A stretch of DNA of 63,163 nt, filler included, from Reticulomyxa filosa (GCA_000512085.1; 25 parts of 25 records of this genome joined end to end with filler, not necessarily neighbours in it), one strand, 5' to 3'; numbered from the whole stretch's first letter, positions 42,591-50,174 are shown. Notes: generated by a model from the sequence alone, not told the origin. Made by a program: numbers and translations.

Positions 42591-45500
42591 ACTTATAATT
42601 CTTTTTCTTTTTTTATATCCAATGCCAAACAAGTCAAGCTAATTCAAAAGCATAAGAACTAAATTTTTTTTGTAGTAAAATTGTTTTTAATGAAAATTAC
42701 AATTTGGTTAAATCACTTTTTGCCTTGTGTAATGCTTGTGTTCTATCTGACATTGACTTTGTTAAGTTTGTGTATGTCTCTTTGTCAATTTTTTAAAATT
42801 CTAATTCAAATTGTTTCTAAAGTTCTTCTTTTGATATGAATGGTCTATTTTTGAATATTTTTGTTTTCACTATCCACTACAGATTTTAGATTTAGTTCAA
42901 ACCCGAAGAATTTAGATTTAAATTCAATACATTGATAGCATTTTATTCAAAATATTCTTTTGCTGTAATTGCTATGTCAGAAAATCAATCATCTATATAA
43001 GTTACAGTTTTATGTCAACTTTACTTTGCATTCTACTGTAGTACATTGATATGGCAATATTGACTGAATCAAACACTATCATCAATACAATAAACAATCA
43101 ACAAAAGATACTTAATCACTTGTTTATTATCTATATTTTAAAATGTTGGAAACTTGTAAAATAGTAATGATACCAACTATATAAGTAAAAATATAGCGTA
43201 GTAATAACGACAATGACAACGCAATACTAAATAAAAATGTAAATATAAAGGATATACATCTACATAATAACGAAATACTACATTTAGTTCGATTACCTAT
43301 GTTGTAAATGTTTTGAAGTCTTTTACTTTAATTTTTTTAAAAAAAAATTGTGGTGACCCTTTTGAAAAAACAAAAAGTGTTTATGTTATTGACATTTTTT
43401 TGATTAATAAAATAAAAAAAATTACACCTAATTGAATAAAAGAATAATTAATCAATGACAAAATATTCAAATATCGATTAAAATTAAAAGCAACGAACTT
43501 AGTACACACAGATTGGAGACTAAAACAGTTTTTTCAAAACTTTTGTAAATCTCCACAAATGATTGAAAGAAGTTAAAAAGGTAATTGTTAGAAGTTAGTG
43601 CAGTTGATCCTCAAGCTTCAATTTTTTTTTTTACGTACTTATTATGTCCAGCAGCATTGAATTTTTATCATTTATAATGATCGATATTTGTGTTCTGAAT
43701 ATTGAAACATCCAAATCATTTATTACATGCAGTAGTATTTTTCGTTGCTATTAGTGAACATTCTTTCTTTTTTTCTTGTTGTTTTGTACTGGTCATTTAC
43801 TTTACTTTTGCATTGCTTTGAAAAAGAAATTACATGTTTCTTTCTTACTGTAAGTAGATTTTAGTTCTTTAAAAATATCCATAGAATTAAAATAAATTAC
43901 TGTACTCATACAAAGAAGGCGCTCTAACGATATCTTCACAATATTGTGGAACCTTTTTTTTTTATAAATAAAAAAGAATTCTTAACATTTAATTTCAAGG
44001 TAGACCATTGGATTGTATATATATGTTTGGACATTGTAATTTTTGCCATTACAGTACAAATGTGAGTATTTAAAGAAAAGGGGTTATTTTTTTTTTTTTG
44101 CAAAGTATAGATATGCTTTTTAATATAAAATGCAGCGAGTGACTGCGAAGGTGTTTTCAAGTCTTTCATCCTTCCCAGAGGATCCAAAGAAAACGACATT
44201 TCTCAGCTCTCATGATGCGCCGAAGAGNNNNNNNNNNNNNNNNNNNNNNNNNNNNNNNNNNNNNNNNNNNNTTAATTAATTAANNNNNNNNNNNNNNNNN
44301 NNNNNNNNNNNNNNNNNNNNNNNNNNNCATTCTCTTTCCAAGGTGAAAAGGATATTTACCATCCAACTTTTTTTTAAGGTGTTAAAAAAAAAAAAAGAAG
44401 ACAAAAGCAAAAAGAAATAGTTTATTTCAGGCGGCGCCAATGGCGCAGTCTAAATCAAACTTTTTCTTTTTCGCTTTTCCCTTCTTTTTTTATTTTTTAA
44501 TATTGAAGCTGTAGTGTTTAACAAACTATAATTTATAATTTGATATTTGGTTTGTTTTTTTGCAAATTATTTTAAATTCAATGTTTACTTTTCGAAGAAA
44601 TGCTTATTATTGTGATGTTAGAAGAAACATTGGTCATTATTGTAATTTTTTTGTTGCTTTTTAAATATTGCTAGTTATTGAAATTGAGTTGAACAATTTT
44701 AATGATTTGTATTGTCTTCATTTGTAATTTATCTTTCAATTTACATAACTTTATCATTATCAACGCAAAGAATTTTTTTTTTATCGGAATTGTTTTTTGT
44801 GTTGTCCAAGATTTTACTCATTTTGAATTTTTTTTTTGTCAGATATTATGGAAAAAATTTTATGTTGTGAATAGACATTTTGTTATTTATGTGTTTACTT
44901 ATTATTTTTTACAAGTTTTGCTATACGGTACCCGTTTAGTTTAATATACTTTGAATTCAAAGTAACTTTATTTTTATTTTGATTGGATTGGAGTTAATAA
45001 AGAATTTTGCAGTTTCCTGTACTATCAGGACAAGTTTTTTTAATTATCAAATGGAAAAGATATAGAATTATTCACACAACCAATTTTGTAGAACATCTTC
45101 ATTCATTCATATATATCAAAAAAGATCCAAGATTTAGAAAATGGATTATATGGTTCGTCTCGATAATGCCATTTGACTTGCCTTATGAACATGTCAGACT
45201 TGACAAGCCGACAAAAGTATTTGTTTGTTGATTTGTAAATGAAATACTTAAAAAGTTGAACAAGAGATTTCGAATTTGTTCAAAGAAAAAAATATCAGGA
45301 ATTTGACTAAATTAAAAAATTTGTTTTGATGATGGAGGAACTTCGAATCATGAAAGAGTAAAAGAAAGAACATTAAATCAATATTATCAAACTATTAAAA
45401 AAATAAATGCTTGTAGGTGAAGTCCAAAAAGACATGACACAAAACTTGGCTCCTCAATAGACAAAATATATCAACTGATTACTTCGATTGTATGATTGTG

Positions 45501-46005
45501 TCCTTTGTTTGAGTCAGTCAAAGTGGATTGACAAACGCCAAGAAGACATCAACAGTAGTTTGATAGATATCATAAACAAAACTATTTGATGCATTTTTTA
45601 TAAATGAAAAAATTGATTCCGCACAAAGTATCTTGTAAGGTTTATAATAAAAAAAAGTTAAAAAGTAAATCAAAGCTGTTTATCCTACATTTTGGAACCT
45701 TTCCAAAAATTTCGTTAAACAATTTTTTTTGCAACTTTTTGAATATGTTCATTGTTTTAATCTGTTGTGTTTGTTAAACTTGAAGGGTACAATTTGTAAT
45801 AGTGATTTTCAAAGACATATTATGCATCTAGTAGTCTTTTTGAAAATATACACTCAATAACAATGTATTATATTTCTGAATGAGCTTTAATTGATTTGTC
45901 TGAAGCTTGACGTTTGCAAATTAGATCTTCGCAACGTGGGGCTTGCAAATTGATAAAAAAATCATTTAAAAGGCTTGTGATATTGGTGACAGAATTTGCA
46001 TAAAA

Positions 46006-49000
46006 ATGACTTTTCGAGAATTGTTGACTGTTTATGCATATGCTTGTATGTATATTGTAGATTTTTTGCATATTTAGATTTTCTGGCCTGGTTAAACAAA
46101 GAAACAAAAACAACTTGGCACGGACGACATACAGGGCTTATGGTAATAACCAGGAGCCAAAGCACAACAATAAAATTTAATCCACAGTTTGAAGGGTCTC
46201 TAGAGTATTCAACGGGATGTCCAGTTTCTGGATGTAGTGTGTTTGTCACACTTAATTTTACGAGCAAATGCACTAATCCTTTGTTGTCATTGAACTATAT
46301 CTTGACAGGTCTGACTGATGGCATTATTTAAAAAAAAAAAAATAGTGTACACCAGCGCATGCAAAAAAAAAAAAAAAAAAAAAAATAGACTTCAATGAGT
46401 CATCCAAATATATGACCGTGGATATTAACGGAGTTCGTTTAGGTTTGTGTGGTGGACCTCTGGAAAATTACAAGAGCGGTGACAAGTACTCTTGTTTTAA
46501 CGATCTTAGTTTGTACGAAGTGACCGGGTCCAATCCCTCATTATTGACAATACAATTGGGAATTAGTGATCAAGTGTCAACAAGGCCAAGTGAAGGGATG
46601 CTCTTAAATGCGACACTTTTTTTGAAATGCACTAGTTTTGCAATATACAAAATATGCAAGTGATCTTTTCTACGAAGCACAATAACGAGATTTGATTGCA
46701 GCTGTATATATGTATACGTATACATTACACATATACACATATAAAGATTCAGCACCTCCACCGTTTGATATCGTTGATCTGACACAACAATCTGTAAGTG
46801 TTTTATCACAATGTCTGCTTCCAGGATGCCAACGCAAAATAAACTTTTATTTGATCGAGCCTACTTTATGTAAATATCCTTTGTTGACAGTTGAATTTTG
46901 GCCGACAGGTTGTTTTATTTTGTTTGTAACAAATGAAATACGACATAATTCATTTGGACGATTACTTTGTGTTATTACATATACATATGTACATATGTAT
47001 ATATGTACATATATACATATATGTGTATATGTATATAAATTGAATAGACTTTGATCAAGAAGATGAATACTTGAGTGTATATATCGAAGATATCACTGAC
47101 AGTTGGAATGATAAACTCATTGGAATATGTGAGTGCAATTTGGCCCGCGATTCAACTGAGTTGTATCGATGCTTTGACAGACTCGACATTAGCGATTGGA
47201 CAGGAATGAACTGGTCGTCGATATCTCTGTTTGTGGATATCTCCCCCGCGGTCGACCTCAAGTGGTTGGATGGTGGCAACAGTCCATTTCGATTGGATGC
47301 CAACATTACATTGGAATGTACGTCGTCATCATCATCATCATCATCGCAAATGAACCAGTTTGATTCCTTGGTCATTCCATCGTCGAATCCAAGCAACGTA
47401 TCCTTTCAATTGACGTGTCATAAAACCAACTGTCAACACCAATTGCAAGTTGCAATTGAAGATGTTATTCAATGTCCCTACGTGATCACCTCATTGCAAT
47501 ATTATACCAACAGTTGTTGTTTTTTTTTTCTTTTTCTTTTTCTTTTTCATTGGATTGAGACCAACTGTGATAAATGCGTCGATATGTGGAATAGACTTTG
47601 CGCAGAATGTTCTAAGCATCGAAATAGACAACCACTTGCTTGGCCGTTGTCAAGTCACAAATGACCAAGATGCTGCCAACCAAGGTTGGTATCGTGCTTC
47701 CACTCCCTCGAATTGAACGCTTTGATGCGCAATCAAACGTCGTTCCAATGGTCCATGCATTTGGCCCACGGATTGCAATTGGACCACATTTCCCACGGCG
47801 TTGTCATGCTATTGCAAGCCAACTTTTCTTGTGCCAACCAATCCAGTTCTTTTTCCAATCACTTATAAAAAACACACAAACAAGTCTCATATCAATTATG
47901 TGTGTGTGTGTGTGTATATTTCTTTTTTTGTTAAGTGCAAGTGCTGAATTCATCCACTGCTTTAACCACTTATTCTCAAAGTCAATACAAATGTGTGTCC
48001 GCAGGGTGCACCGCATCTTCGCATACTCAATTACCTTCATCTTCATCTTTATCTTGTTCGGCCTTGTTACTCTCGCTTGACTTCTGGCTGACAGGTTCTT
48101 TTTTATTATTTTATTTTGTGTATTTATTTATCTGCTTGTTTGTCCATATATGCCATTGTTTTTTTTTTTTTTTTGTGAACAAGACTATCTCACTTCTTCG
48201 CAATATTTAATGATATGGCTAAATGGAATGTACTTTGGCCGCTGTGGAGGAAACATGAACGCGACTCGCGGGAGCTTGTGCAATTGTGTGACGTCGGCAG
48301 ACATCTCCGAATGGACCCAGACATTGCCGTCGCTCGACATCACGCTGTCGACCACGAACGATGTCTGTGGGCTGACCCAGGCGGTACAACAACACTTGTT
48401 GAATGCGCGGACCTCATTGCATTGCATCTCAAATCCACATCAAACGCCACAAGCTACCATCGATCTCTCCACTCCCGTCGCCGCAAAGACCAATCAATCC
48501 CTACCCCTTCGTTGCACCGGGGTCGGATGCAATGCCACCGCCACTTTCTATATTGTCAACACAAAACTCTGTCCGGATTCCATTCTTTCTGTTCAATTCT
48601 GGTCCACCGGTTCGTCTACTACTACTACTACTACTATTTACTATTACTTAATCCATATATATATATATATTTTTTTTTATCAGTTCTTCCTAAAGATATA
48701 CGTATACGTATTGCTTGTTTATCCTTTAATGAACAAGGCTTTGACACGGTGAATAATTACGTGGACGTATATGTGAATGGAGAAGCCATTCAACGATGCT
48801 TTGGTAGCCAACACCAATCCGAACTGTTTCATTGCATTCAAAACCGCAATGTCCGTCAGTACTTGGCGCCTTCTGCAAGCACGACGACGATCGACAATGG
48901 CAGCTTGTCCATTCGCTTGCAACTGTCCCACAACTCCGATTGGTTGAATCATGCAAAAAATATCACAATGTTGGATTCCATTGTCACGCTTACTTGCGCT

Positions 49001-50004
49001 CTTTCCTTAAGTTGGCATTTCCCACTTCTTCCTGCTCGCCATATTATTGTACATACAAATCTGCAAGCAAACCAAACAAACAAATACACATATATATATA
49101 TATATATATATGTATATTTGTTTGTTTGCTTTGCTTGTTTTTGACAAAAAAAAAATATATATATACAATGAATGAAACCAGATGCCAACGACTCTGAAAC
49201 AAATTCCACAAACACGGTGATAAGTTTGCAAATAAGTATCAAAAAAATGGACTCTTTGCAAATTGATAAAAATACAGGGATTTTATTGAGACAGTTTCGG
49301 TTTGCATTGGACAACTGCATTCGATACATTGGCAAAACGAGCAGCTATTCGTACACGCTAGACAAAGGCCCGTTGACGACTATTCACACCACTTATGAGA
49401 GTAAATTAAGCATGTGGATCGTTGCCTCGACGTACACTGAAGCAATCGAAATTATCGACATCGTAGCGGAGCAATTCTTTTTATTTGTTTTTCAAGAGTC
49501 TCTCAGGGGCACCCCTTTTCAAAATGCAATCATTGATAGTATTTCTGAAATACAAATGATCGCTGCCATCCCTCCAAGTTAAGCATTCTTTGCAAATTAT
49601 ATTTTGAAGAGATTATTATAAATTTACATGTCCATACACAATACGTATCATAACGTGGTGGGGGGGATTTGTTTGTACGTTGTGAACCTCTTTGAAAGCA
49701 CCAAGACCGACTGCATATCCGACACATATTTTAACCACTGAAGTAAATGTCGAAACGACAACAGTAACGTCGAATGAAACGCATGTACGCTCAGAGGTCT
49801 CCTCTCCTCCTCCTCGACGCTGGAATTGGCTAGAGATTTTGGGCGTCGTTGGATTGGTGGTTGTCACTATTTTGGTTGTTTTGTTTTGCTATTTTGGCTT
49901 TACCAACATATCTCACTTTCAGAATTGGCTGCGTTACGGAAAACCTGTTCCAACAGAAGGCATCGAGCACTCAGGGACTGACAGTCTCAAACGTAACAGA
50001 AAAC
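46006..50004 (+). CDS. Type I membrane protein: signal peptide, 5 tandem six-Cys modules, juxtamembrane domain, Thr/Pro stalk, TM helix and cytoplasmic tail; 3' partial
   Basis: Exons 46006-46045, 46135-46308, 46389-46634, 46747-46908, 47048-47512, 47595-47845, 47936-48094, 48184-48609, 48738-49010, 49182-49577 and 49699-50004, all GT-AG and phase 1. Signal-like start MTFRELLTVYAYAWLMVITRS; TM ILGVVGLVVVTILVVLFCYFGF. One frameshift near 47695. Confidence 0.8.
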
Positions 50005-50025
50005 GTATGTTGATCTCACCTCAAA

Positions 50026-50056
<31 letters not shown>

Positions 50057-50174
50057 TCCTCCCCTTTTTTTNNNNNNNNNNNNNNNNNNNNNNNNNNNNN
50101 NNNNNNNNNNNNNNNTTAATTAATTAANNNNNNNNNNNNNNNNNNNNNNNNNNNNNNNNNNNNNNNNNNNNTTT

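Follow-up and report, generated by a model that had tools for sequence, protein, structure and literature searches.

A Reticulomyxa filosa gene that probably encodes a surface glycoprotein with five tandem copies of an unnamed six-cysteine module

The window in this work is a 63,163-nucleotide stretch (filler included) of 25 joined parts of 25 records from the foraminifer Reticulomyxa filosa (GCA_000512085.1). We examined positions 44328-50071, for which a preliminary description had proposed a surface receptor built from five copies of an unrecognised six-cysteine module. Using three-frame translation and splice-site inspection, we assembled a multi-exon gene on the + strand whose translated exon chain gives a conceptual product of ~958 residues. 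The gene carries five repeats between 46140 and 49010, followed by a Cys-poor domain, a Thr/Pro stalk and a transmembrane helix. Its parts, in positions of the window, are listed below.

45745..46045, + strand: candidate leader (signal-peptide) exon region, with ATG 45745 (MFIVLICC..) or ATG 46006 (MTFRELLTVYAYA..)
46140..46308, + strand: repeat 1 N-half exon, CPVSGC ... LLSLNYILT, phase-1 donor ACAG/gt
46389..46634, + strand: repeat 1 C-half exon, DFNESSKYMTVDING ... LNATLFLKC
46747..46908, + strand: repeat 2 N-half exon, CLLPGC ... LLTVEFWPT
47048..47512, + strand: exon with repeat 2 C-half, Ser-rich linker and repeat 3 N-half, CHKTNC ... LQYYTN
47595..47683, + strand: repeat 3 C-half, first part, ..FAQNVLSIEIDNHLLGRC..
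47684..47688, + strand: one-base frameshift within repeat 3, read as X
47689..47845, + strand: repeat 3 C-half, remainder, VSCFHSLELN ... LLQANFSC
47936..48094, + strand: repeat 4 N-half exon, CVSAGC ... LLSLDFWLT
48184..48609, + strand: exon with repeat 4 C-half and repeat 5 N-half, CTGVGC ... ILSVQFWST
48738..49010, + strand: repeat 5 C-half exon, GFDTVNNYVDVYVNG ... LDSIVTLTC
49182..49577, + strand: exon of the Cys-poor membrane-adjacent domain, predicted beta-alpha-beta-beta-alpha-beta fold like SEA/MAD
49699..50030, + strand: exon with Thr/Pro stalk, transmembrane helix (about 49827-49901) and basic tail; stop 50028-50030
46309-46388, 46635-46746, 46909-47047, 47513-47594, 47846-47935, 48095-48183, 48610-48737, 49011-49181 and 49578-49698, + strand: the nine introns

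All nine introns are GT..AG and in phase 1. They are 80-171 nt long, AT-rich (21-33% G+C) and filled with microsatellites (poly-A, ATAC/ATGT, TG, AT, CTA). Because every intron is in phase 1, every internal exon is phase-symmetric, which is the pattern expected of shuffled extracellular modules. A phase-1 intron splits each repeat at one common point, directly after T and before D-F. Phase-1 introns are also found where repeat 1 meets 2 and repeat 3 meets 4, but not at the 2/3 and 4/5 boundaries. We used the locally translated exon chain, with X at the frameshift, for repeat statistics, a local hidden Markov model (HMM) and comparison with fetched proteins. Database, family and structure searches were run on single exons or on homologue sequences.

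The five tandem repeats are well supported. Local alignments of half-repeats reached z-scores of 14.8 (C1-C4), 12.7 (N2-N5) and 12.0 (C1-C2) against 300 shuffles, and we found all of the opening motifs (CPVSGC, CLLPGC, CHKTNC, CVSAGC, CTGVGC) and closing motifs (..NATLFLKC, ..DANITLEC, ..QANFSC, ..NARTSLHC, ..DSIVTLTC) that the preliminary description had named. Its six-cysteine module also holds up, with six aligned cysteines in every repeat and all 30 core cysteines kept; one further Cys is present in repeat 2, and two in repeat 4. From one repeat to the next, the opening cysteines lie 134-155 residues apart, and the modules themselves span about 115-125 residues. Repeat 3 is the most diverged of the window repeats and gives the weakest alignments. 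The Cys-poor domain, stalk and helix lie downstream as described. The helix is a single strong hydrophobic segment near the C-terminus, with a Kyte-Doolittle maximum of 2.95 across ILGVVGLVVVTILVVLFCY. The product carries 19 N-x-S/T sequons for N-glycosylation. Phase-1 GT donors occur at 49992/49993 and 50004/50005, followed by an (AAT)10 run that resembles those of the other introns, and the cytoplasmic tail may continue past the examined piece through these donors.

A profile built from the exon pieces (A5) was used to search 1.84 billion cluster representatives. The search returned 60 proteins at an expectation value (E) <1e-3, 20 at E<1e-10 and 3 at E<1e-30. The best match, P0001, has 1230 residues and is encoded by one uninterrupted, intron-free open reading frame (ORF) on a 3.9-kb JGI contig (L001). 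It is collinear with the window model over residues 23-915, with 27% identity and E 5e-99. Because the model aligns collinearly with an intron-free protein, we conclude that the exons belong to one protein, and this disposes of the concern that they might come from separate ones. P0001 consists, in order, of a leader, five modules, a Cys-poor domain, a Pro/Thr stalk, a transmembrane helix and a long tail. P0001 and the L002 and L003 genes, the latter two from marine metagenomes, share the part order of the R. filosa protein with module-by-module orthology, at about 27% identity to it. They differ from it in the cytoplasmic tail, which in them is long and of low complexity and here is either short or truncated at the edge of the piece. 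Hydrophobic leaders are present in the homologues P0001, P0004, P0006, P0016 and P0045.

The local HMM of the five window repeats found 151 copies, mostly full-length, in the 62 proteins fetched by then. The module cysteines occupy HMM positions 4, 9, 23, 56, 70 and 117. Across 83 near-complete copies, Cys is conserved in 93% at each of positions 56 and 117, in 82% at position 70, and in 55% and 37% at the 23/26 pair. The other conserved residues in these copies are D36 (93%), V97 (87%), N49 (71%), D98 (70%), E42 (66%) and D38 (64%). An N-terminal C-x4-C pair is found in 72% of copies and is absent as a pair from two subfamilies. The family signature reads C-x4-C, C-x2-P-x-L, T-D-F-D, E-Y-x2-(I/V)-x2-N-G, G-x-C, C, (I/V/L), S-x2-V-D, L-L-x-A and a closing C, with four core Cys taken as invariant. 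The five window repeats belong to this 'TDFD' six-Cys family, aligning over the entire repeat alignment that underlies the HMM.

Named relatives include the foraminifera Nonionella stella (2687 residues, ten copies) and Bolivina argentea. Outside the foraminifera there is a single record each for Symbiodinium sp. (a dinoflagellate) and Chrysocystis fragilis (a pelagophyte). The module thus occurs beyond this gene, and by these attributions the family is spread over Stramenopiles, Alveolates and Rhizaria (SAR). P0010 (Nonionella stella, 2687 residues), P0035 and P0021 carry five to ten tandem copies without the N-terminal C-x4-C; on sequence grounds these foraminiferal copies form a second, larger subfamily. 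In P0060 (434 residues, attributed to Symbiodinium sp. Y106), one module (24-146) lies on the N-terminal side of a pore domain of the potassium-channel type (Ion_trans_2, E 1.9e-16), a fusion that is possibly a ligand-sensing channel. Module copies occur in a secreted-protein context in P0040 (1365 residues), with a subtilase domain (PF00082, E 2.7e-27), and in P0043 (1216 residues), with a PAN domain and PT linkers. On a TARA contig, an ORF downstream of P0017 (L006:2357-3262) encodes a module-like sequence followed by an Asp/Tyr-rich, Cys-poor region. A word-index protein search gave no match with the largest exon, one fragment with the 30-repeat alignment, and only the window's own ORF with the Cys-poor domain. 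Feature searches of the ESM Atlas returned only an unnamed PT-repeat-rich cluster (scores 0.83-0.85), and a full-text literature search found nothing relevant to this protein or domain.

The arrangement of modules is old. In a maximum-likelihood tree of 30 repeats, modules R1, R3, R4 and R5, each taken across four genes, form one clade apiece, with support of 92/62, 99/98, 98/96 and 100/99, respectively. Ultrafast bootstrap is 98-100% for the R3-R5 clades and 92% for R1, and the R2 modules fall into two groups. These positional clades indicate that the five-module layout predates the divergence of these foraminifera. On this tree, all five modules have orthologues at the same position in other foraminiferal species, and the array is old and fixed, not a recent expansion. 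The intra-module phase-1 intron also recurs in place, in module 2 of L002 (L002:664-728) and module 3 of L003 (L003:1669-1768), where it follows ..T/N and precedes D/N-F; in R. filosa it is present in all five modules. This recurrence suggests that the intron is ancestral, with later losses. Several ORF fragments from other species stop directly after 'FW(L/Q)(T/S)G'. In module 3, the conserved Asp is missing from every species.

No named domain accounts for the module. Pfam and NCBIfam gave no family match to the window exons, to full-length homologues, or to 30 intact repeats searched singly (E up to 10), and profile searches of PDB sequences returned only a weak match to an immunoglobulin (Ig) domain of FCRL5. 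The strong match to a known domain that would have removed the novelty was thus absent from both exons and intact homologous repeats, and the domain stays unrecognised, as the preliminary description had it. These searches show that the modules form a sequence family without a name in any domain library. For structure prediction, we ran AlphaFold2 on an intact homologous repeat, module 2 of P0001, with a 30-sequence alignment (A6). The model (mean predicted local distance difference test, pLDDT, 85.6; predicted TM-score, pTM, 0.80) is an eight-strand beta-sandwich, which bears out the beta-sandwich proposed earlier, and the N-terminal C-x4-C closes its first hairpin. The model shows the module as a six-cysteine jelly-roll beta-sandwich. 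Fold searches with it returned only jelly-roll sandwiches with no clear winner; the best Foldseek match was CUB1 of MAp19 (E 5.6e-4, TM-score 0.41). As modelled, the fold is therefore a common jelly-roll, with CUB among several equally weak structural neighbours.

The Cys-poor exon (49182-49577) is conserved in P0001, P0002, P0003 and P0005. Its model (pLDDT 88.3) has a beta-alpha-beta-beta-alpha-beta arrangement, an alpha/beta sandwich beside the membrane as in SEA domains. The predicted domain resembles the SEA and MAD membrane-adjacent domains of animal adhesion receptors. SEA and the MAD of protocadherin-15, cadherin-23 and CELSR share this ferredoxin-like fold, and they occupy the same place in type I surface proteins that carry tandem sandwich domains, immediately ahead of the stalk and the membrane-spanning helix. 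The exon has no Pfam match to SEA (PF01390) at E up to 10 and lacks the G|S[VI]VV (G|SVVV) autoproteolysis motif. Generic ferredoxin-like proteins such as MoaC, Cas6 and RNase P subunits score about as well as SEA/MAD, so the likeness does not establish common descent.

Taken together, the locus is probably one multi-exon R. filosa gene for a type I surface glycoprotein, with five modules of an unnamed family and a SEA/MAD-like domain, for which a role in adhesion or ligand capture is the most likely. An extracellular setting is supported by the 19 sequons, the stalk, the transmembrane helix and the leader-bearing homologues. Adhesion or ligand binding is what we infer from this architecture. 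From the outside in, the protein would consist of a leader, five tandem modules, a SEA/MAD-type alpha/beta domain, a Thr/Pro stalk, a transmembrane helix and a cytoplasmic tail. The five sandwiches, rigid, glycosylated and stapled by disulfides, would form an extended rod that holds binding surfaces off the membrane. The acidic cluster (TDFD, E-Y, V-D), complete in module 2, could hold a metal ion or a ligand, by analogy with CUB and carbohydrate-binding modules (CBMs). The SEA/MAD-like domain and the stalk might tie this rod to the membrane in the manner of animal adhesion receptors. Adhesion or ligand capture on the surface of the cell and its pseudopods would be the most likely role.

Several observations weigh against this reading. 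Of the five modules here, module 2 alone has the complete acidic cluster (D36, D38, E42, D98), which is degenerate in the other four. The repeat that was modelled is a homologue's, about 27-37% identical to the window repeats. We saw no intracellular signalling domain in the piece, and the gene model is a prediction from genomic sequence. The sole in-frame ATG, at 46140 ('MVITRSQ..'), gives no hydrophobic leader, so the signal peptide is the one part of the preliminary observation that was not confirmed, whereas its repeats, motifs and downstream parts were. Of the candidate leader exons, the one starting at ATG 45745 has several donor/acceptor pairs that stay in frame, and the one starting at ATG 46006 would need a 32-nt intron, as read by eye; we cannot choose between them from the sequence alone. 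Finally, repeat 3 requires a one-base frame change at about 47684-47688, which the earlier account did not mention, and the copy could be a pseudogene. The rival readings considered here (pseudogene, distant CUB, lectin or CBM) overlap with the surface-glycoprotein reading and are not mutually exclusive with it.

The frame change bears most directly on whether the locus is a decaying copy of a conserved five-module receptor. No intron explains it, because the loop there equals that of the other repeats in length. It is thus an error of the assembly or a genuine mutation that disables the gene; the former would fit a draft assembly that was, we presume, built partly from indel-prone 454 reads. 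Repeat 3 also has the longest branch and an odd composition, and the leader exon was not found, both of which fit decay. Against decay, some 2.9 kb of coding sequence holds only this one disruption, every splice site is intact and in phase 1, and all 30 core cysteines are retained. Repeat 3 matches its orthologues on both sides of the shift (clade support 99/98), and it is the most diverged module among the homologues as well. We consider a pseudogene unlikely.

Also improbable, to a similar degree, is a place for the module in the CUB superfamily as a very diverged member, which would then act as a Ca2+-dependent protein-binding domain like those of complement proteases and cubilin. CUB (PF00431) is an extracellular, disulfide-stabilised jelly-roll of about 110-120 residues found in tandem arrays, and the modelled repeat has the beta-sandwich jelly-roll topology of a domain of that kind (about 110 residues). 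Besides MAp19 CUB1 at the top, further CUB chains are among the Foldseek matches listed. The conserved blocks L.F..TDFD, EYL.V.(N/D)G, G.C and L.I.L..S..VD follow an order resembling the CUB consensus (F..FDLE, YDYLEI.DG, G.FCG, L.I.F.SD.S), a likeness that serves as a lead, not a test. The conserved acidic residues may correspond to the place where CUB binds Ca2+; a Ca2+ site of Glu/Asp/Asp with Tyr occurs in a subset of CUB domains. In contrast, no profile match to CUB appeared for the 30 intact repeats at E up to 10, the full-length homologues at E up to 1, or the window exons. TM-scores are only 0.38-0.42, and the structural similarity is no better than to unrelated jelly-rolls. The cysteine pattern is also unlike that of CUB. 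CUB has four cysteines, which form C1-C2 and C3-C4 disulfides at canonical places. The module has no Cys before the 'Y-L-x-V' strand, the site of the third CUB Cys, and its six cysteines lie elsewhere, including the N-terminal C-x4-C hairpin staple.

Slightly less likely is a lectin or CBM of the galactose-binding-domain-like type, in which case the protein would capture glycans of prey, substrate or matrix. The best structural neighbours include sugar-binding jelly-rolls (CBM6, CBM35, CBM36, GH2 N-terminal domains and malectin), and the model shares the jelly-roll of solved CBMs. However, all of these scores fall within the range expected from a merely shared arrangement, none of the 30 intact repeats matched any CBM family in Pfam, and known sugar-binding residues could not be mapped onto the module. 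The BcsB CBD, CBM6/35/36 and galactose-binding-domain-like domains are mostly bacterial, lack the six-Cys pattern and have no detectable sequence relationship to the module.

An Ig-like domain in a shifted register is effectively refuted: the first profile matched FCRL5 Ig domains at a summed E of 2.7e-5, but the per-domain E was only 3-4, the 30-sequence profile dropped FCRL5 to E 0.018 (per-domain E at least 100), and the model is an eight-strand jelly-roll for which the only Ig among the listed fold matches is an antibody Fab complex at rank 42 (TM-score 0.32).

What is new is a sequence family inside a common fold, in an architecture analogous to that of animal adhesion receptors. Foraminiferal biology depends on sticky, motile pseudopod networks for prey capture and, in shelled species, for shaping the test. 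To our knowledge, no foraminiferal surface adhesion or receptor molecule has been characterised. The locus offers a concrete, conserved candidate: its ectodomain has a fixed set of five modules, and the domain next to the membrane is built as in animal adhesion receptors. A bolder proposal, which we regard as a long shot, is that the module is an ancient SAR-wide extracellular binding domain, possibly a deep sister of animal CUB domains, and that the five-module protein is the foraminiferal adhesion receptor, linking particles and substrate at the pseudopod surface to the cytoskeleton. Such a link would account for adhesion and surface transport on reticulopodia. Current libraries miss this family, which is attributed to all three SAR groups and is in some proteins fused to channels or proteases; a curated family model would annotate many 'hypothetical' protist and metagenome proteins. 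Since the fold is a common one and protists have many domains without a name, we regard the finding as useful and not startling.

The 1.4 kb upstream of the gene (44328-45700) has 20-31% G+C and appears intergenic, as it contains no ORF that convinces and matches neither a tRNA nor an Rfam family; scanning the whole piece for tRNAs and Rfam families likewise gave nothing. Within the same assembly (GCA_000512085.1), the 573-bp contig ASPP01048809.1 (L008) is 99.6% identical to 49155-49666, with two mismatches, and the 136-residue ORF of the Cys-poor exon recurs identically on it. This near-identical contig represents either assembly redundancy or a second allele.

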